Positions 44,285 through 64,000 are shown, numbered from the stretch's first letter. The stretch is DNA of 64,000 nt from Dimorphilus gyrociliatus (GCA_904063045.1 CAJFCJ010000006.1:4170408-4234407); one strand, 5' to 3'. The notes: generated by a model from the letters alone, not told the origin. Numbers and translations are program-made.

Positions 44285-47217
44285 TTAAGGCTTTTTAACA
44301 AGAATATTTAAAATATCTGTTACAATTCTATTTAAATTATGCTCATCCGGATGAACAATAATTTCGTCCAGGACTTCCAGAACACCGTCCCGAATAGCTA
44401 ATGTACTATATTTCCTTCCTGTAGAGAGATAATTCTAGGTCAAGTGAAATTAAATAAAAAACTAAAAACACATTACGAACGATTGTTTAGCAATAAATTT
44501 CTTAATGTCCATAAAGCCCATTTTTTAACAGCAATTATATTCGATTTAATTAAATGTATGAGTCCATTGAAAGAGGAGTAAATATGAAAAGATGGATAAA
44601 TTTCATCTCCCCACATATTTACCTTGTCCAGCTTTTAGAATGATTAATATATTGAAAATATATTAAAATTAATTAGTCCTACTAATGTATAATTACCAGA
44701 GCAGTTTGCAAGATCTTAACATCTTCTTTAGAGTAGATTGTTGATGAACATTCAGATTCTTTTAATAGTTTAATAATTAGTTATTAATAATTAATGAAAA
44801 TAGCTAACCAATAATAAGAATATGAGCTAGATTAGCTGCAGCAGTTTGTGAAACTGGAAATTCATGCTTTTCAATTCTCTCTAAAACAAGAGAGATAATA
44901 TCTCGATCTTGCATTACTATTTGTTTTGTATTCTGAGTCATAAGGAAGAGGAACTAAAATAGGTAATAAAAATAAAGTTATTTTAAACGTAAACAAAGCT
45001 TAGATAATAGAATACCAGTAATGTAAACAATCGTCCTTCAATTGGTGCAAGAACATCATTTTTATCCTGAGGATTAATTGTCTGTAATAATAAAAGATAT
45101 AGATATATACATATATATTAATATATATATATATATAACTACATATAAATGTACTTATCAATATAAAGATATTTATCTATTACCTTCAATATCATTTTAA
45201 ATACTTCGTATCGTCCTTCGGAAAAGAATGTAAGCGATAGCGAAGAATGCGCTAAACAGGTAAGTATTCTCAAACAGGAATAAAGGGTAAAGGAAGCATG
45301 TTGTGTAAAATTTTGTAAATAATATTCTATATGACGAAATAGAGATGTAATAAAATTTTCAATTAGCTCAATTTGACTTTTAGTGAATTTTATCTAAAAA
45401 TTAATTAATTATTTAATTATTTAATTAAAGATAAATAAACATGCTAAGAAAAACTTACGGTATGGATTCGTATTTTCGAGAAAAAAGTCATACAAGCAAC
45501 GTAAAGTTGCCTAAGAACCGAATCATCATTTATTTGGGAACCCAATTCAAGTATTATAGATAATGAATGAAAATCATTTTGAACCTTAAATCGTATAAGG
45601 AAGAGATTGATAGGTAAAAAAGAAATATATAATTTTAGAATAGATCAATTAGAAATTCGAAATATACCGCTCCTAATCCTCTGTAATTCCTATAGATTGC
45701 TCCCAAACATAGATTAACAATTTGAGAATGAGTCTTAAAACTTTCAAGAATTTTGAAACATAGCTTTACTATTCGATAGCTAATTGGCAATTTCGTTATT
45801 GGTTTTTTATAACAACTAATAGCATCGATACTTGATAGGCTATGTACAATTAGGTGATAAGATTCAGTTTTCTTATAATTGTGATAGAATTTCCAATTTT
45901 CTAATATATCACATATTGTCTTAAAATAAATAAATAGATTAGTTTAATTAATTATCTAAATAATTAATTAATTACCTGTAAAATATCAATATATATTGAA
46001 TTATTCGATTCATCATCATCAATTCTAAGAATAGTAGTACAGAGGCTTTTTAAAGATGTAGTAATTGCCGTTACATTCAATGAATTGTTTTTTAAGCAAT
46101 TCAAAATATTCTTTAAACACTGCCTTCCCGTTATCTAAATGTTTTTATTTACATTATCAATGATTATATAATATATAAATATACATTATGGTTAATCTTT
46201 ATTATATCTATTAGTATAAAATACAAACATTGATATTGCTGAATTGCGCCATTTTATCTTCGCAGTTGGTTAGAGTTAATCCTAAAAATTTTAACTTTGG
46301 ATGTCTTTGAATGAAATTCCTAGAAATGAAGTTATTACTAGTATAATAATTCTATTAATTAGATTGATATTTTACTTAAGAATCACTTCGTGACAAGTCC
46401 AATTGCCACTAATATTTAAATAAATCATATTTGGCCATATTGTTCCTTCTAAGAAGTTATTTAAATAATCTATAGGATTATTTGTATTAAAAGCATCCCT
46501 AGATACATCAAGATGGTTAAGTGTTCCAATAGTTTTTAGATGATTTAAAGTTGATAATGTTGTGAAATATTGATTGAATGAACAGTTTAAAATTTTTAAA
46601 TTAACCATTTTAATCAGAGGTTCAAGGTCAGTTATAAAAGTTTTTGCTAAATTTAATTTCCTTAAATAAGGTAAATTTTCCACAAGGAAAGCTAAGTTTG
46701 TATCACTGAAGTTTGTAAAGCTTACATCTAAGCTCAGAAGATGTTTAAACTCAGTTAAAAAGTCAATAGCTCTATACTCCGATGTATACTTTCCACTTTC
46801 AAGATTCTTAGAATTAATTATACAACCGGAAATACCTAAATGAGTGATATTTTCACATTTAAATCCAATAAGCCATTCTTTAGCAGGAAAATGTCTAAAG
46901 TATTCTATTTGGATCGAAGTAATATTATGACCTACTAAATTAAGTATGGAAGATTTTTCTTGAATTCTATTGCCGTGCATTTTGATGAAATTGAGAGATG
47001 TACGATTTGGTTTAAATACCTTTAAAGTTTCATCCGTAATACCAATCTCCTCATCATCCAAAATATTTAATAAGTACTCTGATATTGTAATAGGAAAATG
47101 AAAAAAATCGCACGACTGTAAATATTCTCTATAAATCAGTTTCCAGTATTTTTTGATAAAAATCAAACAAATATCTTGCAGTGTGTCAATTTTAAATTGT
47201 GTAATATCTCCTGACAT
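44285..47217 (-). CDS. ZYG11/ZER1-family LRR-ARM protein (putative CRL2 substrate receptor), divergent
   Basis: N-terminal DTLQDICLIFI (BC/VHL-box-like), FPITISEYLL...TDETLKVF; LRRs (LLSLDVSFTNF, LRKLNLAKTFI, LNHLDVSR); helical repeat exons ending AIRDGVLEVLDEII...LVKKP*. Confidence 0.7.
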
Positions 47218-48763: not shown

Positions 48764-51700
48764 ATGAACAATTATTTGGATGCTAAGTTATCAGGTATGA
48801 TATTCGTATCGCAAAATGTTGAATATTTCATCAGTTTGCTCTGTTTGAATTCGTGTCAATTTTTGGGTCTCTCTCTCTCTCTCTTTCAATATTTATATAA
48901 TTTATATCTATTTTTAATGCGTTATTATAATTGATGATAATTATTATCTACAAAAGCTGTAGAAGATATCGAAGAAAATAGCATACATTTGGAAATGAAA
49001 AGGGTTAAAATAAGTGATTCTTATAGGAAAACATCTCCAAATGTTATCATAAAACCTGTAAGTAATTAAAAAATTAGACATACAGGTATATTAATTCATT
49101 AATCAATTAATCAATTTACGTTTGTCAATCAAATGAAATAATGAAACAAAGGAATCGAATGAAAATCCACTTATTTATCCCGTTGAAAAGGCTCAGCGTA
49201 AAGAATCTGCGGAGGAAAAATCAATTTGGAAACGCTGGAAACTAATGATAATTATTTTAATAATTGTAATTGTTCTCTTAATATCCATTATTATTGGAAT
49301 TATACTTGGATTTACGATTAAAAGTATAATGAGAATAATAGTTAAACCATTGCTTAAACTAGTCATGTCAAATAGCTTCAACAAACGATAATCATTCGTC
49401 AGAATCGTGGGTCTATTACGAAAGTATTATGATTTAATTATAAATTAATATCTTAAATAATATGACTATAAATTTCAAAATTTTGTAGCAATTGTCTCAA
49501 TGGAAATTAATATGAATAAATCCTATAATGATAATTTAAAGGATAACAGTTCAAAGGAGTATAATGATTTATCAGATGAACTACAATCATCATTTACTGA
49601 TTTTATGAAAAATTCCAAAAATAAAAGACTAAACTATTTAACTTCAATAAACAATATAAAATTTAAATCTGGAAGTATAATATCAAACTTTAATATGTTA
49701 TTCAAAAGCAATAATAAAGCTGAGAGCGATATTAAAGTTGAAGAGATTGAAAATATATTTAATGAAATATTACAAATTTCCAAATTAAAGTTGACATTCT
49801 TTAAGATTATCTTAATAATTTATAAGAAAATATCTGATTCTTCTGAAGAAATGTTTACTGTAAAACCAACTGAAAAAATGACAACAACTTTACTTCTTGA
49901 TACAACTAAGACAAGTCCAGTAGTTGATACTACTATTCCAACAACAACCGTGCAAACTTCAACAAGTCGTAAGTATTGTTTAATTATATTTAAATTATTT
50001 AATTGCCTTAATTTATATAGGAACAAGTACAAAATCGATTTTGCAGTCGACACTACCCTCTCCCAGTGAATATAATTTTCTATAGAATCTGTATTATAAG
50101 TATTATTTTAAAAACATTTTATCAATTTTTAGATATAGAAACGTGGTCATTCGAAAAAGAATTGGATGATACTTCAATAATATCTGGAAATAGTTTCTAT
50201 TCAACTTTAAAATGGAAGAGGATGACAGTAAATGAATTAAAACGTGCTCTTCCTGTATCCGAATCAATAAATCTTGTTGGAAGAGGTCTCATAACACTAA
50301 TATATATTTAAAAAAACATAAATAGTACTTGAATTCTACAGATTCCTATTTGTACTATGTCAATGGTTATAAATCATTTTCGAACGAGTTTACAATTCTT
50401 CTCACTCCAGTTGTTAAAAATTTATATAGTTGTTCATCGTTATATTATTACATCTCTAATCCTGACAATGGTACTATATTCTCAGTAAATAGCCTTACAT
50501 TCAATATTTATTTATTGTATTAATTTTAATAATTATTATCCTTTCGAAAACAGATTGGTATAAAGGTTAATGAAAAGTATCTGCCGGTTCTACGTTATCC
50601 TTATCTTAATGACTTTTGGAACTTAATAAGAATTAATAATTTGCCTAAAGAATTTCAAGTAAGCTACATTCGTTATCTATAGGTTTCGCTTATTTAATTT
50701 TATTATTTATTAAGTTTGTCTTTACGGTGCAAAAGACTTTTAATTCTAATATTAAAGTAAATATTGGTATTGATCAAGTTCAATTTCATTCAAAAGGCTT
50801 TTGTAATGGAGCATCTAATGATATGCAAGGTTAATTAAATAGGTTTTTGAACAATTTCACCTAATTAATTAACCTTCTATTACTTTTTCTACAGAATTGA
50901 ATAATATTAATTGCAATTTCAAGTTGAACACTTGTGGATATTATACGCAGTTTTCATATAAACTTACAGCCGGCCTTACTTGGCATAGAGATATTTACAG
51001 AGGTATTTACACATTCATAAAAAATAAAATAAAAAAGGCAGATTGCCAATAAAACATAGACATACTTTAGCTTTCATATATTATTCATTTTTTCCTTGAA
51101 CAGGTCAATATGTACTAGCTGCTTATCCTTTATATACGACTCATGAATCTCTTGAAACTAAATTATATTCACCTAAATTTAAATTACATAAAGATAATTG
51201 CCTAAGAATCTCTGGTACAAGAATAAAAGGGGCAACTATAATACTGAATATTAATATGTACAATCCAAATGGAATTTCAGCGTAAGCTTTATAAAGGAAT
51301 TGTTTCCATTAAAAGAATAACATATCATTTAATATAAAGGCCTTTGAAAAATATCGTTTTTAATAAACATACACCAGATACAGTTGGTTATATAGAAATA
51401 CCAAAGATTTACGTTCAAGTATGTTCAATAGTTATTGTTTTTTTAATAACCTTAATTAACGATCAAATCTTTCTTTAGTTTAGCATTTCACCATTGAAAA
51501 GTGATGACAAACCTAGTTTGTTATTCATTATTTCTATATCTTTATTAAATGATTCTTGTCCTGTTAAGCGCAATGGTTTATAGAATTGAAAATATATGTT
51601 CAATTTTTTAAAGGTACATGTTTTTTGCAGATGCAACTTTTGAAAAGAAGTTATGCTCTTTTGATAAAGATATATGTAATTTTAGATTATCATATTCAAG

Positions 51701-54700
51701 CCGGCGTTCACCGGGTTCAAGGCATTTTGCTTTCCAGAGAAAGGAAATTCAATATTTTCCAAGTAGAAAGTTTTTAATATAAACATTTTGAACGTTTACT
51801 GTAGATTAATATGTTAATTTGTAAAGATACTGAAGCTTATTTACTTGCCAATGCTCAGGATGGAGTGCATTCGAATGACGTAGCTATTGTCGAGTCTCCT
51901 TTAATAAGTGATACAGGATATACTTGCTTGTATTACTCTTATACGATATCAGCAGTTCATAATACAATAATAGCAATCTCTGTACGTCTATATTGTATAA
52001 AACTATAAAATTATAAATAATTTTATTATTCAAATACTAATATATCTTTATGTCTTTATCTAATTAATAGGTAAATATCTTAGATAGTAATAATACATTT
52101 AGAACACTTTCATCGGTTGAAAAGGCTACTAATTCCGCATGGTATACCAAAAGAACGGATATTTTCTCAGATATATCTTACAAGGTACTTTTAATAATAA
52201 CATACATAATCTATGTATTTATTCTTATCAACAGATAATTATAAAAGCGGCAATTTTATCTAAAGGAAGATACGCACATATTAGAATAGATAATATTGGT
52301 ACAAGCAGATCAAGATGCTACAAAGATGAATATTATAAAGGTAAGATTTTTTGAAGAAATTGAAGACCGATATTTTTTAAATATATAGTATTTTAATTAT
52401 AATTCATATATAGTTTCCCCGACTTGTGACTTCAACAAAGATCTTTGCGGCTACGAATTAGCCAACAAGTTAGAAAGCTCTTTTGAATGGGATCGCTCAA
52501 AATTAAATACAACAACTGGTAGAAATATTTAAATATTCTTTATAATTACTATGTAATAAAAAAATAAAACATTTAAATTAGATAACATAGCATTAAGAGT
52601 TGTCCAATCAGAATATACTTCAGGAGATGTTGCAACATTAATATCACCAGAAATAGGAATAAAAAATTCAAATAAATGCGTCTACTTTGATACATATTTC
52701 ATCAATGAAAAGTACATTGTTTCTAATGAAACCTTTTTAAGAGTTTATCAACTTTTAGATGACAATAGGAATCGAGAAAATATGTATATATTTCTTTCTT
52801 TAAAGGAATTAACTATATAGAATTATATATATTTTATCATTTTAGATTAAATATTTCAAGAAACACTTGCTACAAACGTTATTATATAAATTTAACGAAA
52901 CACGTCTCAAAGGTAATCTCTCCAAAATGTTTTAACAATCCGTTTTAAATGTACTATAATCCTTTCTTTGTTTGTTTTCCCCTATAATAGATTATTTTTG
53001 AAGCTACATCAGTGTCTAAAAATGAGGAAACTTTCTTTATCGATAATATTTTGTTCAAAACTGGTAATTGCGTTGAAGGTTAGTTAACTAATTTGAACAA
53101 TTTATTATATTATTACATACTATGTTTACTAATAGAAAATGAAGCTATGTGCACCTTTGAAAATGGTATATGTTATGAATATTCTGTTAAAACAACTCAT
53201 AATGATAACTGGATATGGAAGATTGAAGATGAAAGTGACTTTCTCGGATTTCAATTACTAAAATGTAAAATAGATACTTTAAACAAGTTAAAAAGAATGT
53301 TTCCTTTATTATTTCAATTTTTTTTATTTAAAAAAAGGTAACAAGATAATATCTGTAAGAGACAATTCCGCTAGTATCAATTCAGCTACAACATTGACAA
53401 CAAGCTATATTAATGCAACGAAAAATCATTGCATATCTTTCAATTTTCATGGAGGAAGGTATCAAAGACCGTTGATGGTAGCCATATTTACTCACTATTA
53501 ACATATATAAGTATATTAAACTAAATATAAACGTTTGAATATGCAGGTTTATATAGAAGTTGAAAATGGAATAGTTTCATGTTCGTATAGAGTGAGACAG
53601 TTAGATAAAATTTGGAAAGTTGGATATATTCTGGATCTACCTCAAACTAATGCATTTAGGGTATTAAATATTGCTTTTATATACTGTATATACAGTATAT
53701 ATAATACGATTAATAATTTCATATAGATTCACTTTAAAGCTGTTAAAGGAGGATTTAAAGACGAAATTTTTGCTATCGATGATCTGAAATTTGCCGATAA
53801 AGAAGTTTGCCAAAACTTTACAAACAATCATATGAATAGTATTGGTAAATTTTCTAAACAAAAAAATAGTTTTATTTCAGAGATAATAACATTGAAAAAA
53901 AATTTTCAATCAGATTGTAGATTCCAGAATGATATGTGCGGATATTCTACAAACGAAGCACTTTATCAAGGATTTTCTTGGTTTAAATATGCTATAGGCG
54001 AAAGTAATAACCAGGAAACTTTTGTAGATGATCATATGTTTGTTAAAAATGACTTTAAATTTTAGACCATCACCTCAGAATTCAAGGCTATAATAATGAT
54101 ACTACAGATCAAATTGCTAGATTAATCTCTCCGAAAATGATTAATCCTATATCAAAGGGTAAATGTTTGTACCTTAACCTTAAGAATAAATACAAGCATA
54201 GCGAAGTCTTTATTAAAACATACTTTAAATTTATTAATGAAACATTTTGGAGGTGATTACATTTGGTTTCTATTCTAATAGATAAACATAATTTTTGTAT
54301 TAAATAATTGACAGTATTCCTGAACAAAAGTATAAAGATTCATGCAATTTTAATAGTATCATCTATTACCATATTGACAAACCTGTCGTACAAGTAAGTA
54401 GACTTGTTTTTCATTGTAAAAAATAAATAAAACTTTTTTGTAGGTCATGTTGGAGATTAAATCTTTAGATATTAAAAATAATATCATTACATTAAATACC
54501 ATCAATGTAGAATATTGCAACGGTAACGGTAAGCTCTTACTACTATTGTTAAAGTCATTTGACCTAGTTATAAAACACAGGAAACTATTCCGACAATCGA
54601 AATTGCGAAGAAGATAGTTTGAAAGATAAACTTACATTAGGAAGTAATAAAATTCAATCGAGTGATTTATCTTGGCAGGTAAATCATCTAGTTTACAAAC

Positions 54701-57700
54701 AATTTGAGTAGGTTTAATAAGTACATAAATGCTATAAAAAGGTATCTTTGGAACTCCAAGATTATGAGTCGTTCAGTCAAAAATGTAGTGGTACAATTGT
54801 TCATAATAGATATATTTTAACGCCGGCCAAATGTATTAGCAGGTTTGTTGTTATATTTTTCATACTATGTAGTACAGTCAATTAGTAATTGTTTTAATGC
54901 ATTTAATGTAGAAATACCGATAGAATAATCATTAGATTTGCAAAATCAAGCATTCCTGTTGAGGTTATCCACAAGAAAGATATAGTATTTTATGCTTCTA
55001 AATATGAATTTCTTAATGTTGCTATAATAAGGTTACCGAGATCTTTAATAGCAAACTTTCCAATAAATCCTATTTGCCTACCAAAAACTACTGTCTTACT
55101 GAATGAAAGCTCTCAGTGTTTTCACGTGGAATTGATGAGTAAGTAGTAGTAGAGATAAAAGTAATTGTTTCTCATCACCATTTTTTACGTTATAAATAGA
55201 CAATGGAACGAATTTGATCAATTGGAGAAAAGTCATTGAGCGAAATGAATGTAATAGAGTAATGGGTAATACTACCGACAGACCAAATTTTGTTTGTGCC
55301 TCTTCAAAGAATCCTTCTAATAAAACTACGGAAAGTTATTGTAAAGTTAGTACTACAGTGATAATATGATAAACATTAGCTATTCAAGTACTTTTACAAA
55401 GGTCAAAGGCTTTGGAGATCCTTTAATTTGTTTGATAAATGATAAATGGTTACTTTTTGGCATAAAAAATTGGATTCCATCAATATGTGAATGGGATTTT
55501 AATGTTTACTCTCATATTTCAAGCAATCTAGAATGGATAAATCGCTCTATTGACAGAGATTTAAAATGTACCGAAAGCTGTGTTATTCCTAAAGGTAAGG
55601 TGGGTAACATTGGCACTTTTCTAGCAGAGTCTTTATAATGGCAAACATATCTTTTTTTAAAAGATTTCTTATTGTTTTGCGACTTTGACGATTCTATCTG
55701 TGGATTTGTGGTGAAGAGCTACCCTAATAATGATATTGTCAAATGGACAAGATCCGTAACTCAAGCTGAAGACAATTGTAAGAAAAGAACAATGTAATAC
55801 GAATGTTATTAATTTAAAACATCATTTTGATATTAAAAATAGGTCCTGAAAGTTTCTTAATGGCTCAAGTACTAAAAGTGAGCGCTCAGAGTGTTGCTCT
55901 AGCTGAACTACCAGTTGTTGACCTTATAGGAGATCTATGCTTAATTTTTAAGTATAAGATTAAGCAGTTGGTCGACTCAACAGTATCCTTATCAGTAAGA
56001 ATTACTAATTGATTACTTAGTGTTTTGGTTTAAGTGATAAGAAAATTTTATAAATATAGGTTTATATCAAATTTGACGAAAATGAACCAATTCCTTTAAT
56101 ATTTTTTGATAAGAATACCAATAATCTTTGGAAGAAAAGCGAGATTAGGATTAATAATAATTCGAAATTTAAGGTAGAATGAAAAGAAAAACGATATCCT
56201 TTGTTATTAAATTATTCATTTATATCTTAAAGATAATCTTCAAAGCATCATTAAATTATGAAAATACTAATTATATCTTATTAGATAAAGTTGGAATAAG
56301 AGAAGGAATATGTCCAAATTCTCCATTAACTAGTACAGGTAGTTTTTCTATCATATAAAAGATTTCCCAAATAATAAAGCTGGTTTATCTTTTAGATAAT
56401 TCTATTGACTGTGAATTCCAAAATGGAATGTGCGGTTATAGTTTGAAAAACAATTTAAAAAGTCCATTTGAATGGCAATATGTGAAAATTTCTACAGAAT
56501 TGAACAAATATGGTTTAAAGTTAACTTCTTTCACAGGACATTCTGAATCTGTGACAGAAATTTTATCATCACTAATTCAACCATCTCAAAATGAAAAATG
56601 TCTCTCTATTAATATTTATGGAAAAAATCGATTATCTTACTTAAAAAATATTATTCATGAATTATACGTAAAAGAAAATGATAAGATAAGAAAGTAAGTA
56701 TGAAAGTATATACTGTAGTATTGTATAAATATAGTGTACACATTGAAATTATAAATTGTAGATATAGAAATTTATGTAATTGGGATGTAAAAATGTCAAT
56801 TGGTGGAAATGTTACCCAGATAATACTCAAGGCAAAGTTAAAGTCAAATTATTTTAGAGAAGATATTTTTATTGATAATATTAAGATAAGAAATGTTCCT
56901 TGTATGCACCAAAGTAGTTTGTCATATATGTTTTTTTTATACAAGTTGTCTTACGCTTTGGATTATTTCACTATAGATCATTTATTTTGTACTTTTGAAC
57001 AAGACTTATGTAATTATACCATCGTTCAATATAATGTTGGAGAAAGTAAGAAATTCGTCTGGGAAATAAAGGAAATTGAAGAGTGTTAGTTATATAACAT
57101 CTTTTATTTTTATTATCTTCTATGCAAATTTTCCCTAATTAAATCTAGGTTCAAGAGGAAATAAAGTTTTAGCTCCAAGATCCTTTGTAGGATCTCGTGG
57201 CGATACTACAACAGCAACTACACCAATTGTTAACAATGATAGAAACTTATGCTTATTTTATAAATATCAATTGACTTCCTACTACTCTAAAATCTCTTTG
57301 ACAGTTTGTCTTTTATCTTTTTTATCAAGGATAAGAAGAATAACAAAATAAACTATACGCTTCTGTTTTCTCCTTATAGGTCTATGTTAAAGAAGAGAAT
57401 GGTAAGATAACTCCCCTTAACTTTCATGTTGAAAATACTGCTCCAAATTGGAAAGCTGGCGAAACCTATTTACCAAGTGGAAACATAAGTGTATTTAATT
57501 TTATCCTACTCCGTTATTAACACAAATTTATATGGATTAACTTTACTATTTTAGATTATATTCAAATCGATTCTATACGCACAATACGGCAGTAATGTAA
57601 TGATAGATGATATTGAATTTAGGTCTTGTAACCTTATTAGGCCAAATGAGAAAAGTTTGTATTTAATAATTGTAGAATATTGCATACTAGTTACATTCAT

Positions 57701-59780
57701 ATATTTTATAAGATGATTCACTATCCTGCGATTTTAATAATGGAATGTGTGGCTATGAATTTGAAGTAGATTTTTCAAGTTCAATCGAATGGCATTTAGT
57801 TGAAACTCAAAGTATTTTCAATATTCTTGTTAATAGTTTTATAAAGAATAATAATATTGTCTTTATTTAGAAAAGAATTCTGTAATACGTTTAATAAATG
57901 TCTATAATTCTAAAAAGAAACAAATTAGACTATTTTCACCAAAAATTCAACCATCTAGAGAGGAGAGATGTCTTTTCTTTCAAATGCATCATATCGTTGA
58001 AAATGATCAACAGTTTTCTCCATTTTTCGTTGTATACGTTTATCAAAGAACAAGCGAAGAGGAGAATTTGAAATTTTTGTAACTAGTTTAGACACCTTTT
58101 AATACTATTTAAAATTTTATTGAAATGTTGAATTATAGTTCAGAAATCCAATCGAATAAAGGATGCAATCATTTTATTCAACTGAGAGAAAATGTCGTCC
58201 AAGTAAGTCATATAATAAAACGTTTAGACTATAAATAAACTATAAATCTTCTAGTTTTCATTTGAAGTTCAAGGACAATTGTTAAAAGAGGAAATTACAC
58301 TTCATCTAGACAATTTTAATTTAATCTATTCAAAATGCCCAAATGGTAATATCTATTCAAGTATCGTAACATTACATAAGGAATATTAAAATAAATATTA
58401 TATCATTTAGATTTAACGAATGATTTGCATTACTGCGATTTTTCAAGTGATAATTGTAATTTTATAATTGAAAATTATCATTCAAGGTCAACAATTGATA
58501 AGTTGAAATGGAAAAATCACGAATCAAAGACAAATTTGCTATGTTAGAACAAAATAAAGAGAAATAAATTTGAAGAGACTAATTTATAAACGTTTTATTA
58601 CATAATTCAGGTAACAATTCGTATATGATGGTTGATTCTGTTGATGGATATCCGAATGAGGTTACAGTATTAAGGTCGCCTTTAATAAACAAAGTCGAAG
58701 AAGCTTGTCTTATATTTGATTATAAAATGCCTAATAAACTACAAGGATCAACTTTATCGGTAAGTTCCATAGAATTTAAAACTTTATACATTTTCTACAA
58801 GGAAATCATATTAATAGGTATATATTCAATACGAAAATAAAGAATTAGATTATATTATATCATATAATCACTTTACAAACGATGATTGGATAAAAGAAAG
58901 ATTAATATTAAAACCTAAGCGAATATATCAAGTAATTATCAATAAGTTTAATTATTGATATAGATATATGATAATGAATATTCTCCTTCTATAGGTTTTG
59001 TTTAAAGTTATTCAATTTCAACTATTTTCCGGTAATATCTATATTGATAATATAATTATATCAAAATCGGAATGTCACAATCCTTCAAATTTTGGATACG
59101 ATAGTAAAAATATTATATAATTTCCTTTATAAAAATACTCTATTAATATAAAACTGCTTTTCAACTTTCAATTGACGAAATAGATGATGAAATTTCATGC
59201 AATTTCAACACTAATTTATGCGGATATAGAATAATTAATCAATTGGAGTCGCCATTTGAATTTCAATATTCCGGTAATAAATTTATTGTTTTTATTGTTT
59301 ATAGCTTTTTTTTACTTTTCTTACATTTCTTTTATTTATACTTATCGAAAAAATGAAGGCGAGTCCAATAGGGGTTTGCAACTGAGAAGGAACGAAAAAT
59401 CGACTGGTTATATTGTCAGGATAGTATCGCCTATTATAAGAAAATCGAGTTTGAAAGACAACTGTCTATATTTTAATATAATTGGAAAAAACAATGAAGA
59501 TATCGATTATTTAATGAAATATTTCTACATATCAATATATATCAATGCTCAACCGAAGAATGGATTTAGGTTAATATCTGTATATTATTAATAATTTCTC
59601 TTTAATAGTTTATCCCTCTACAGCAAAACTCAGTTTACTCTAACATCTTCGAGAAATTTTATACCTGTAAAGGAAACTACCATTCAAATTATGCTTGAAA
59701 TTGAATCCTTTCCAGATCTTTTTAACCAAGAATTATACTTTCAAAGCATCATATTATCTCCATTACCTTGTCTTTCCTAA
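48764..59780 (+). CDS. Large type II membrane protein: TM, SEA, Thr-rich linker, 6x MAM, inactive trypsin-like domain, 6x MAM
   Basis: Hand-spliced model with more than 40 short exons. Putative start MNNYLDAKLS|AVEDIEE. TM KLMIIILIIVIVLLISIIIGIILGFTI; SEA with FKSGSIISNF; twelve MAM-like units (CxF...C...W...L.SP...CL...I.F...IDNI...C); protease-like segment about 54581-55593. Not every junction was verified and the start is uncertain. Confidence 0.75.
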
Positions 59781-60628: not shown

Positions 60629-61414
60629 ATGGAAAACTTTCCACTATTTTCATTATATCTAATATTATGCTTTTTCTATGTACGAGCTGAAGTAAAATCG
60701 GATTGTTTGTCGTTCGATCCACCAGATTTGGTAGAGAGGCTTACGAGATTTAGGACTGAAAATGATTTAGAAGTAGCTGAATTTAGTGAAGAAATTGATA
60801 AAATAGTATTTGAGAAGAAAATTCTTAAAGATTCAAGAGCGAATGCAACTTGTCCTAATTCTTTACAAGAACATATGCAAGAACTGAATAATATCTCAAA
60901 AATGCAGAAAGTAGATTTACGAGTGTCTACATGTCCTATTTTTAACGTTGTCAGTTATCATGAAAAGCGCTTTCCGAGATCGATTACCGAAGTGCGGTGT
61001 CGTTGTTCCTCTCCCAAAACTCCTGGCTGCCTTAGAGAAAATAGTCGAACCGATTCAGATTATGAGTGCGGTCCTATAGCAGTTAGAGTACTTGTTTTGG
61101 TAAAGAATGGTGAATGCGAAAATAACTTTGCAAAATATGTTCCTTATTGGGATGAGCAAGTCGTTGGATGTGGTTGTCAAGCTTCTAAATGGCACGAAAA
61201 GGAAGTAGAACATTCTACTGTTGAATCTTTTACATTAACTCCTCTAAACAACGAGACGACAACAAGAAAATTTACAAACGAAAGTCATAATACAACGATA
61301 AATACAACAAATTCGTCAACAACTGAACAATATACGGAAACAAATTTACTTCAAATAAATACAACAACCACAAAATCCGTATTACAGAATGAAACAGTAA
61401 ATTCAGTTAGTTAA
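60629..61414 (+). CDS. IL-17-like (IL-17/PTTH/Trunk cystine-knot family) secreted protein with Thr/Asn-rich tail
   Basis: Signal peptide MENFPLFSLYLILCFFYVRA; STCP...RFPRSITEVRCRC...C...C.PI...VLVL...C...YVPYW...VVGCGC is the IL-17-type cysteine pattern. Single coding exon. Confidence 0.75.
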   Translation: MENFPLFSLYLILCFFYVRAEVKSDCLSFDPPDLVERLTRFRTENDLEVAEFSEEIDKIVFEKKILKDSRANATCPNSLQEHMQELNNISKMQKVDLRVSTCPIFNVVSYHEKRFPRSITEVRCRCSSPKTPGCLRENSRTDSDYECGPIAVRVLVLVKNGECENNFAKYVPYWDEQVVGCGCQASKWHEKEVEHSTVESFTLTPLNNETTTRKFTNESHNTTINTTNSSTTEQYTETNLLQINTTTTKSVLQNETVNSVS

Positions 61415-61560: not shown

Positions 61561-64000
61561 TTAAATTGTATCAGGTGTTTTATTTATACAATATCCAATT
61601 GTCATCTTAATCTTAGATATAAGAATATAGTTATTAATACTAGTTTCGTTCTTAAATATTGTCATAGAAAACTGAAAAAGAACAAAAAAGAGGTTTTATA
61701 ATATTGAATTCTTTATTATTTATTTAGTAAAAACTACCTGATTAATAGTTTTATCTAGATTGAACAGAATATAATTGTTACAGTGTATTATATCGGTAGG
61801 ATATCTATTTAAATAAAATATTTAATAAATATATACATAAAGATATTTCAAAAAAAATAGTTTATCACCTAAACTCTTTATCAGAATCTCGTTTAACTTT
61901 CACCGACAAACTAGCTGAATTTGATAATTCAAGTACGCTGATATTTAAGCAACTTTGTGTAAAATTATTATTAAAGATTGGTGAATACAGAGTTTTGGAA
62001 CTGTTATCATTCTTTTCATTAATTCTACCCATAAGTAAGTATTCTAATAAAGTATTAGGATATAGATAATTAATTAATTTCAATTAAAAAACTAATTTAA
62101 ACATGTTTTATTACCATTTTCATTAGTTGATAATCTTTGCCAATCTATTCCCTTCTCAGAATAGTCGCCGTTATTCATATAGTATCCACATAAACTTTTC
62201 ATAAAATTACATGATACGTTGATTTCTATTCGTATTAATTAAAGCTATAATTAAGCAAATAAGGTAGATAATAAACATTTACTCTCTGGATGATTTATTG
62301 GTGATGAACAATTAATATTATCAATTATTATTTCAGCTATTTTGAATATTGTACTATTAGATAGACTTGAAATAGCTTGAATAATTAATTGATTATCTCC
62401 AGTATTAGACAAGATAGATATCTGCAAATTTTTCCACTCGTTTCTTTTAAAAGATGAAAGATTGATAATAGGAATTGTCTTATTATTTTTCTTAAAGTAT
62501 ATCTAAGATTATTGCAGAATATTTATAATCCAGCCTAATCTAATATAAGTTTTTTTCACTTACTGATAACATTCCGCAATTTTGAATTATTCTATTATTA
62601 GCATCAAAAATACTTAGATTAAAATTGATACATCGTAATTCTCTATTCAAATTTGGCGTTATTAATAAACTACTTTCACCCATGTTTGAATGAGAAGTAT
62701 TAACAGTTAAATATCTCTTCTCTGGAATAAAATTGTTAATGTTAATATTCTAAAAATAATATTGAATTTTAGTGATTTTTTTTAATGATTCACCTCTTTT
62801 TCTCAAGTTTTCTCCAAGCAAAAACCATTTGAAATGGGATTGTTCATTTAAATTTAATATCTTTAAGTCGTCTAGATTATCGTTAAAAAACCATGATAAA
62901 GCTATAATTTAATAAATGTATATATTATATAGTATAAAGTATATAAAGTTATTAAAAATACCTGTAGAACAATTGGAAATTGATAGGCTAATTAATGATA
63001 AAGTTGCTTTAAAATGGTCGTTATTTGGAGATTTTGCATTGAAGTATATCTATGAGAAGATAATGATAAATTTTTTAAATGATTGTGTTTCTATTTCTTC
63101 CTTAATACCATTTCAGCCTTATCATTAATATAAGTTATCCATGTATTTCTATGAAATCTATCCATTACGTGACTATGTAATAAAGTAAGATATTAAAAAA
63201 ATCTTATGTAACACACTCAATGTTTACCTTTTTAATACAGATTTCGATTTACTTTTTAATGATATTGCCACAACATTCCATTCGAATTCCATATTAGAAT
63301 CTAATTTATATGATAAACACAATCTATTAGCCTTGGTTGTCTTTAATTTTGGGATTATTAGTAAAGCTTCGTCATCCAATTTTGAATATCCATTTAAATT
63401 GAATTGATATAGATTATCTGAGGATAAGAATTCAAGAGATTGATAATTAATTAATCTTTATGAATACCTTTCAAATTTCTATTAATCTCCCATTGAAAAG
63501 GCGATAATATGTCATTTTTAAAGCTATAACCGCAAAATACATCATTAAGTTTACAATCTGGAATATTTTGTTGTAAAAAGTTGAAGTTATTACAGATTTA
63601 TTAAAAATAGTATTACAAACCGGAAATTGCATTGGATATGAAAATGCTTGTACTGCATTTAAAATGAAGTAATATATTATCAATCGCAGCGTATGATACT
63701 CTCATTTTCAAACGATTTGTTTGAATTGCTTTAAATACAATCTAATAAGGAAAATGAAGGAAAGAGAGAGAGAGACAGAGAGAGAGAGTGACTGTTTATT
63801 AATTGTATTCTATGATTAATTTATATTACTTTATATTGATTTGGATAAAAGATATAAGATTGCTTCTTCCATAAAAACTTCCCAGAATCCGAAACAGATA
63901 GGATAATAGGATTTTCGTCATTGTTTTTATAAATATAAATCTAAGGAAAAAAGTTAAAATAAATGAATATTCATGAATAATTAATCATAGATTATGATAA
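61561..64000 (-). CDS. 3' part of a second multi-MAM-domain gene that runs off the right edge
   Basis: Spliced exons give IVFKAIQ...AAIDNILLHFKC, DCKLNDVFCGYSFKNDILSPFQW, LLIIPKL...LCLSY, LLITPNL...CINF, LYSPIF...SCLNI, and a final FSMTIF...ILISKIKMTIGYC...*. At least three full MAM units and one partial. Confidence 0.7.
63763..63788. repeat. (AG)n microsatellite in an intron
   Basis: About 13 AG units with one interruption; forms the polypyrimidine tract of a minus-strand acceptor. Confidence 0.85.

Follow-up and report, generated by a model that had tools for sequence, protein, structure and literature searches.

A Dimorphilus gyrociliatus gene predicted to encode a membrane-anchored SEA-MAM protein with a dead, internal trypsin-like domain

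TTSPs, the type II transmembrane serine proteases, have a cytoplasmic tail, a single signal-anchor transmembrane (TM) helix without a cleavable signal peptide, a stem of adhesion modules, and a C-terminal trypsin-like (S1) protease with a His57/Asp102/Ser195 triad. Enteropeptidase (TMPRSS15) and the HAT/DESC members (TMPRSS11D) combine a short tail and signal-anchor helix with a membrane-proximal SEA domain and a propeptide cysteine before the S1 domain; enteropeptidase also carries one MAM domain in its stem, among LDLa, CUB and SRCR domains, and ends in an active protease. Polyserase-1 (TMPRSS9) is a TTSP with a non-C-terminal S1 domain, and one of its S1 domains is catalytically dead. In haptoglobin, HGF/MSP, protein Z, Drosophila masquerade and the insect clip-domain serine-protease homologues, the trypsin fold and its disulfides are kept, the catalytic residues are replaced, and the domain is a binding module. 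Long tandem MAM arrays on or near epithelial surfaces are known from MAMDC4/endotubin, MALRD1 and zonadhesin. We take enteropeptidase, polyserase-1, haptoglobin/HGF, masquerade and MAMDC4/MALRD1 to be the nearest described architectures to the one reported here, a MAM-array gene with an internal pseudoprotease domain on the plus strand of a 64,000-nucleotide window of the genome of Dimorphilus gyrociliatus (GCA_904063045.1 CAJFCJ010000006.1:4170408-4234407, or C6:4170408-4234407).

A splice model of this locus gives one open reading frame of 53 exons and 2387 residues at window positions 48995-59780, which encodes, in order, a cytoplasmic tail, a signal-anchor TM helix, a SEA domain, a Thr-rich stalk, six MAM domains, an S1 protease-like domain, six further MAM domains and a stop codon. 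All 52 introns are of the GT-AG type and measure 39-165 nucleotides (median ~64), a compact size typical of the locus, and exons have a GC content of 29.3% versus 21.4% for introns. With a probability of roughly 0.6, we read the locus as one intact gene for a type II TM-SEA-MAM6-pseudoprotease-MAM6 protein of about 2390 residues, with a non-enzymatic role as a surface scaffold or in adhesion or ligand binding. The original prediction, drawn from the DNA sequence, had described an apparently intact gene whose checked junctions keep the frame open, in which a TM-SEA start and about six MAM units (~50130-54530) precede a dead, internal trypsin-like domain, and six more MAM units (~55665-59780) follow it. 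Each element that it named was recovered at about the place it had assigned: the frame stays open through 53 exons with canonical introns, profile analysis yields 6 + 6 MAM units, and the protease triad between them reads Lys/Asn/Phe.

The gene model combines the junctions of the public annotation with a first-pass splice model, alternatives being picked by MAM profile score. Database and structure searches used single exons or the public protein as query, the joined 2387-residue model was analysed by scripts only, and genome-wide scans covered the 77.9-Mb assembly of 349 contigs. The region is ~27% GC and contains numerous short plus-strand open frames with MAM-like C-x-F...C-G-Y starts. A first dynamic-programming gene model ran too far, with 58 exons, some introns read through and false 3' exons reaching 60690, and was corrected with the public model and the profile. 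The public record of the locus is the uncharacterised DgyrCDS5264 (CAD5116365.1; UniProt A0A7I8VJB1; P0001), a protein of 1925 residues that was retrieved as the top match of the MAM8 exon; on the plus strand, it begins at an internal Met (49851) and ends with the stop codon at 59118-59120.

The S1 domain is encoded by five exons at 54581-55594 (trypsin-like domain at 54631-55560, residues ~1205-1430 of 2387). PF00089 matched residues 931-1143 of the public protein over profile positions 7-220 of 220 (46 bits, E = 7.4e-12, cut-off 20.6), and the top match of the domain in the Protein Data Bank (PDB) was chymotrypsinogen A (E = 1.1e-9), with TMPRSS2 among the top matches and haptoglobin among those of the last protease exon. 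The triad was read from alignments to chymotrypsin A, chymotrypsin C and TMPRSS2, and the codons were read directly. His57 is replaced by Lys (54829-54831), giving T-P-A-K-C in place of T-A-A-H-C, Asp102 by Asn (55015-55017), and Ser195 by Phe (55411-55413); moreover, Gly193 is Lys (55405-55407) and Asp194 is Gly (55408-55410). Judged from these codons, the domain would be incapable of hydrolysing peptide bonds and, without Asp194, of undergoing the usual activation switch. The loss of the triad, Gly193 and Asp194 indicates that the S1 domain could act only as a binding or spacer module. In the chymotrypsin alignments, all eight cysteines of the S1 disulfides 42-58, 136-201, 168-182 and 191-220 are present; a Cys122 equivalent is found as well (in PICLP), and a propeptide Cys stands nine residues upstream of K/LTLG, which replaces R/IVGG (54595-54642). 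The retained disulfide framework and propeptide Cys suggest that the domain descends from an activatable, disulfide-tethered protease.

Compared with enteropeptidase, the gene thus has a stem of six MAM domains in place of one, an S1 domain without the triad, and six MAM domains after it. Since the S1 domain is internal and its catalytic positions hold Lys, Asn and Phe, we file the gene not as a TTSP but as a TTSP-derived pseudoprotease. Polyserases have at least two tandem S1 domains and this gene has one; in polyserase-1, the first S1 domain is followed by further S1 rather than MAM domains, and there is no SEA-MAM stem. The non-catalytic S1 homologues named above bear their S1 domain at the C-terminus of secreted proteins, and none is TM-SEA-anchored or embedded in MAM arrays. 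MAMDC4/endotubin, MALRD1 and zonadhesin are, in contrast, type I or secreted proteins in which MAM domains are interleaved with LDLa, SRCR or VWD domains, and they have no S1 domain.

Scanned exon by exon with Pfam, only the SEA domain of this gene was clearly significant; the MAM and trypsin exons gave weak matches (E 8e-4 to 0.1), being too short and divergent, and the public protein and a locus-derived profile were therefore used instead. On the public protein, Pfam MAM scored 270 bits with seven passing stretches. The MAM profile, built with jackhmmer from MAM7 as seed and iterated over the locus proteins, also gave 90-129 bits for each of the seven canonical MAM domains in P0006, a MALRD1-like protein from a sea urchin with a Pfam MAM score of 945 bits, supporting the conclusion that it is a genuine MAM profile. 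It resolves twelve MAM units at 57-143 bits, six at 50189-54521 and six at 55675-59771, and over the 64-kb window in six frames it found no match outside the gene and a neighbouring paralogue. In a six-frame scan of the genome, the MAM exons of the locus were among the weakest of 131 MAM matches. A profile built from the sea-urchin MAM domains alone was too narrow, reaching at most 18 bits.

All twelve units lie on the plus strand and, apart from MAM8 and MAM12, comprise four exons each. In the first block, MAM1 (50133-50829) scores 56.9 bits over profile positions 15-150; it is N-terminally degenerate and lacks MAM Cys1 and Cys2, and its exon at 50326-50484, which is skipped in the public model, has an exon-level profile match at 50332-50481. 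MAM2 (50895-51575) scores 88.0 bits over positions 1-150, and MAM3 (51631-52340), which also has a Pfam MAM match at 51820-51987, scores 99.8 bits in the final model. With the first exon of MAM3 lengthened to 51631-51762, where the public model stops it at 51675, the profile score rose to 106 bits from 94 and the Cys1/Cys2 motif was regained. MAM4 (52414-53078), MAM5 (53136-53844) and MAM6 (53914-54528) score 112.7, 96.0 and 94.8 bits, respectively. The second block opens with the best-scoring unit, MAM7 (55664-56338; 142.8 bits), followed by MAM8 (56396-56901; 102.1 bits), which has two exons with the first two exon parts fused, MAM9 (56977-57654; 116.0 bits) and MAM10 (57713-58345; 104.9 bits). 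MAM11 (58411-59103; 127.9 bits, Pfam MAM match at 58604-58765) scores 127.9-137 bits with its first exon at full length (58411-58542), versus 115 for the public version cut at 58458. MAM12 (59184-59780; 84.4 bits) has three exons, with exon-level profile matches of 31, 34 and 18 bits, and ends in the stop codon at 59778-59780. Pairwise identity among the twelve units is only 11-30%. The MAM cysteines at profile columns 2, 9, 66 and 149 are nevertheless present in 11, 11, 12 and 11 of the 12 units, which argues for continued selection on the fold. We also compared each MAM(i) with MAM(i+6); the identity matrix has no such pattern, arguing against a recent block duplication.

The membrane anchor lies upstream of the public model. 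Exon 1 (48995-49057) holds the proposed start codon (48995-48997) and the first 21 residues of the cytoplasmic tail; no ATG comes earlier in the open frame (48941-49066), and the exon ends at a GTAAGT donor that starts at 49058. Exon 2 (49152-49323; 172 nucleotides) splices in frame, lies 165 nucleotides upstream of exon 3, and encodes the rest of the tail and the signal-anchor helix, a run of 24 hydrophobic residues (residues 52-75, 49242-49313) preceded by KRWK, as read by eye from the sequence. The tail of 51 residues ends in this KRWK and depends on the N-terminal extension of the public model. Inspection of the predicted N-terminus revealed no signal peptide. This lack, together with the positive-inside rule, points to a probable type II orientation, and a tail with a single signal-anchor helix and no cleavable signal peptide is the arrangement of TTSPs. 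The original prediction had placed the start at 48764. We prefer ATG 48995 as the conservative, if uncertain, choice, and retain ATG 48764 as an alternative, in which an exon at 48764-48794 would be spliced to 48963 and an extra intron of 168 nucleotides would be required. A short CT microsatellite at 48868-48886 (plus strand) occupies the putative 5' region and would fall in the first intron if ATG 48764 were used.

Exon 3 (49489-49968) encodes the SEA domain and then a Thr/Ser-rich stalk. The SEA domain (49512-49790, within the open frame 49461-50066) matched PF01390 with 37.1 bits (E = 3.6e-9, cut-off 26.4) and was the best SEA match in the whole-genome six-frame scan (38.2 bits). The best solved structures for this exon are SEA domains of HAT/TMPRSS11D-type TTSPs (2e7v, E = 0.0096, and 8vis), in line with the TTSP-like start of the original prediction. 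The domain contains a G/SIIS autocleavage-type motif (GSIIS, 49671-49685), from which self-cleavage is predicted. In the stalk (~49851-49968), 44% of the residues are Thr or Ser, and it is probably O-glycosylated. A stem that opens with a SEA domain and continues with six MAM units is again an adhesion-module stem of the TTSP kind. The start Met of the public model (49851) lies in the same open frame directly downstream of the SEA domain, so that the coding sequence has to begin upstream of this Met. Two possible in-frame micro-exons with canonical splice sites were noticed in this part of the gene, at 49376-49423 (48 nucleotides) and 50021-50065 (45 nucleotides), the latter encoding further Ser/Thr-rich stalk.

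The genome-wide scan detected at least ten loci with MAM arrays followed by active or dead S1 domains (C7, C13, C14, C37, C47, C90, C118, C229, C265 and C305). As in the present gene, a MAM array, in some cases after a SEA domain, precedes the S1 domain, and several triads are dead (for instance, with H57 changed to V, K, D or E, and with G, L or T at S195). The C265 gene (C265:1-9000, minus strand) has a SEA domain, ~7 MAM units and a C-terminal S1 domain with intact His/Asp/Ser, and is likely a living example of the ancestral layout; C13, in the stretch examined, has two MAM units and an active protease. C14:255001-305000 (minus strand) carries tandem MAM-block/S1 genes in an apparently duplicated unit of ~14 kb, and its five S1 domains read H57 to V, H57 to K, active (T3), dead with E/N/T, and active (T5). 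A weak SEA match on C14 overlaps a MAM match, is absent from the Pfam scan and was discarded as spurious. C37 and the near-identical C305, C229, C118 and C90 have, in the stretches examined, dead sites in which A, Y, D or S stands for H57 and I, G or L for S195. The last four are small contigs with four to five MAM units and a dead protease (H57 to D/S, S195 to G/L); the C229 and C118 copies give identical peptides, and some of the four may be haplotigs or very recent duplicates. Tandem S1 domains occur in the paralogues on C14 and C37.

The neighbouring family member is a convergent paralogue that lies tail-to-tail downstream on the minus strand (window 61870-64000 and beyond, ~C6:4232277-4236425). 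It has an RRRK + TM exon, followed by a SEA domain that contains EGSIIS, scores 28.3 bits with Pfam and is 42% identical to the one described here, then ~5 MAM units, and no S1 domain; the shared TM-SEA-MAM order supports the TM-SEA start of our gene. For the last protease exon, the closest relative is the H57-to-V domain on C14 (43% identity over 47 residues), and all other similarities to family members are at 22-35% identity. In the rest of the family, the S1 domain or domains end the gene; this gene is set apart only by having six further MAM domains behind the protease in combination with a TM-SEA anchor. On sequence comparison, we read it as an unusual member, probably without enzymatic activity, of a MAM-array protease family that is lineage-specific.

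Whether the two MAM blocks belong to one gene turns on the junction between the protease and MAM7. These are separated by only 130 nucleotides: 19 residues and a single 69-nucleotide intron (55595-55663, GTAAGG...AAAAG) lie between the C-terminal helix of the protease and MAM7's first Cys, and the public annotation uses this junction too. No in-frame Met or signal peptide was seen between the two domains, which makes one gene the best reading; the only ATG there, at 55638, was considered as an independent start of MAM7 but lies in another frame, which closes after 16 codons. By contrast, in the two C14 blocks that we inspected, a stop codon follows the S1 domain, and a Met and hydrophobic signal peptide appear 350-600 nucleotides later, before the next MAM block. 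The same stop codon and new Met/signal peptide removed C14 as a second candidate for a single MAM-protease-MAM gene. We are accordingly confident, though short of certain, that a single gene crosses the junction, as the original prediction had it. If the 69-nucleotide intron were retained, however, translation would end at a stop codon at 55636-55638, 14 codons past the exon end, yielding a TM-SEA-MAM6-(pseudo)protease, and MAM7-12 would then be a rarely spliced extension or what is left of a downstream MAM-array gene that was formerly separate. The other MAM/protease genes examined in the genome, with a C-terminal protease, a stop codon and a new signal peptide, fit such a division into two products. 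We consider it unlikely: MAM7 lacks an in-frame Met or signal peptide, neither a promoter nor a 5' exon would fit into 130 nucleotides, the intron combines a GTAAGG donor with an acceptor and a length that are typical, the frame of MAM7-12 stays fully open through 21 exons with the cysteines kept, and the public annotation joins both halves.

DgyrCDS5264 could also be correct as deposited, that is, a protein of 1925 residues that starts at Met 49851 without TM or SEA and ends after MAM11. It is the only deposited model, and all of its junctions are canonical. As it stands, though, it would be a disulfide-rich MAM/S1 protein with neither signal peptide nor anchor, and just upstream of its start, within the same exon and frame, stands the Pfam-significant SEA domain. 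Coding parts of MAM1, MAM3 and MAM11 that the profile supports (50326-50484, 51676-51762 and 58459-58542) are missing from it as well, and its last five codons are read from a canonical 80-nucleotide intron (59104-59183) whose donor is GTAAAA and beyond which lies a complete, open MAM12, absent from the deposited protein. DgyrCDS5264 appears to be truncated at both ends, and we regard its accuracy as deposited as very improbable. A decaying gene, or an artefact of assembly or annotation, is the least credible of the alternatives, even though the MAM units are highly divergent, MAM1 shows degeneration and the searches produced no orthologue: 2387 codons are open at 27-29% GC, where stops would make up ~8% of random codons, every splice site is canonical, conservation extends to the structural cysteines, and exons and introns differ in GC content as given above. 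Set against the single intact gene with a non-enzymatic role are the possible retention of the 69-nucleotide intron; the differences between our model and the sole public one (the start, the skipped MAM1 exon, two shortened exons and the end); the lack of any RNA-derived fragment of the gene among the results of the protein-collection searches; the reading of the TM helix and topology by eye; the assignment of function by analogy only; and the outcome of the orthologue searches described below, which found none and so give no cross-species support for the layout or the dead site.

Based on these data, we propose a plausible course for the protein. Its N-terminus would remain in the cytoplasm, with the signal-anchor helix holding it in the membrane in type II orientation. 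The SEA domain would cleave itself, leaving two chains held together non-covalently, as happens in mucins and TTSPs. Beyond it, a Thr-rich, O-glycosylated stalk would lead into six MAM beta-sandwich domains, the trypsin-fold domain and another six MAM domains. The twelve MAM domains would supply surfaces for adhesion or oligomerisation, and the fossil protease may serve for binding or as a spacer, like the S1 domains of haptoglobin, HGF and the insect serine-protease homologues. By analogy, the most likely role is that of a sheddable, non-enzymatic cell-surface scaffold or adhesion/ligand-binding protein; the adhesive-scaffold, decoy and recognition-platform roles of the original prediction are plausible on the same footing. 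The matches of the SEA exon to TTSP structures and TMPRSS2 among the protease matches suggest TTSP ancestry. The ancestor would most likely have been one of the worm's MAM-array proteases of the C265 kind, which lost catalysis and gained a second, C-terminal MAM block, possibly through fusion with a downstream MAM-array gene that had lost its signal-peptide exon. Fusion of two once-separate tandem genes would be a reasonable origin.

A role connected with proteolysis despite the dead site, as a membrane-bound decoy for inhibitors or as a substrate-presenting cofactor of active family proteases, like the insect clip-domain homologues, would draw on the retained S1 fold, disulfides, propeptide Cys and basic residue at the activation position, as well as on the existence of active MAM-array relatives (C265, C13, and domains T3 and T5 of C14). 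The loss of Asp194 and Gly193, however, suggests that the substrate-binding site does not adopt the mature protease conformation, and we hold such a role to be doubtful. Equally tentative is a further reading, in which two tandem MAM-array genes would have fused into a stable and expressed gene whose product displays the former TTSP protease as a non-catalytic recognition module in the middle of a ~50 nm surface rod, cooperating with active family proteases. It could, for example, be a membrane-bound trap for substrates or inhibitors, or a microbe-binding platform adjoining an IL-17 gene. If so, the gene would represent a new class of TTSP-derived pseudoenzyme receptor.

In the collection searched, no close relative of similar length emerged outside the species. 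Against 1.84 billion representative proteins, the MAM8 exon gave six matches, namely four from D. gyrociliatus, the sea-urchin P0006, which is the only named match from outside the worm, and P0002. The last (Logan, 124 residues) is an exon-like open reading frame that shares 36% identity with the MAM8 exon; where other units carry an intron, it has an in-frame insert of 21 codons, and it may represent a related species' orthologue. Word searches that took the whole public protein or its protease region as query (targets of 1059-3369 residues) returned the query alone, and one with the last protease exon returned nothing; such searches are insensitive below ~45% identity, and thus exclude close relatives in the collection but not distant ones. 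Full-text searches of the literature yielded no paper on this layout or on annelid MAM-array proteases, and the one candidate paper dealt with astacin-MAM proteins instead. The layout had originally been put forward as undescribed; this agrees with the literature searched, but the gene itself was already public as DgyrCDS5264 and belongs to a family. Should transcripts confirm the model, it would be the first TTSP-type protein found in which the protease is both dead and internal, flanked by MAM domains. The gene and its paralogues (active, dead, with or without SEA, and in tandem on C14) form a compact natural series for the passage from membrane protease to pseudoenzyme and for the reshaping of mosaic proteins by fusion. 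Its wider significance is limited, as the domains are well known, pseudoproteases are common, and the gene is seemingly confined to one lineage.

Two other genes flank the locus in the window. Between the two convergent MAM-array genes lies the IL-17 gene (60629-61414, plus strand), a single exon encoding 261 residues with an N-terminal hydrophobic signal and a PF06083 match of 38.8 bits. Upstream, at 46372-47217 on the minus strand, is a separate gene with an open reading frame of 281 residues that contains leucine-rich repeats (PF12799, 33.9 bits).

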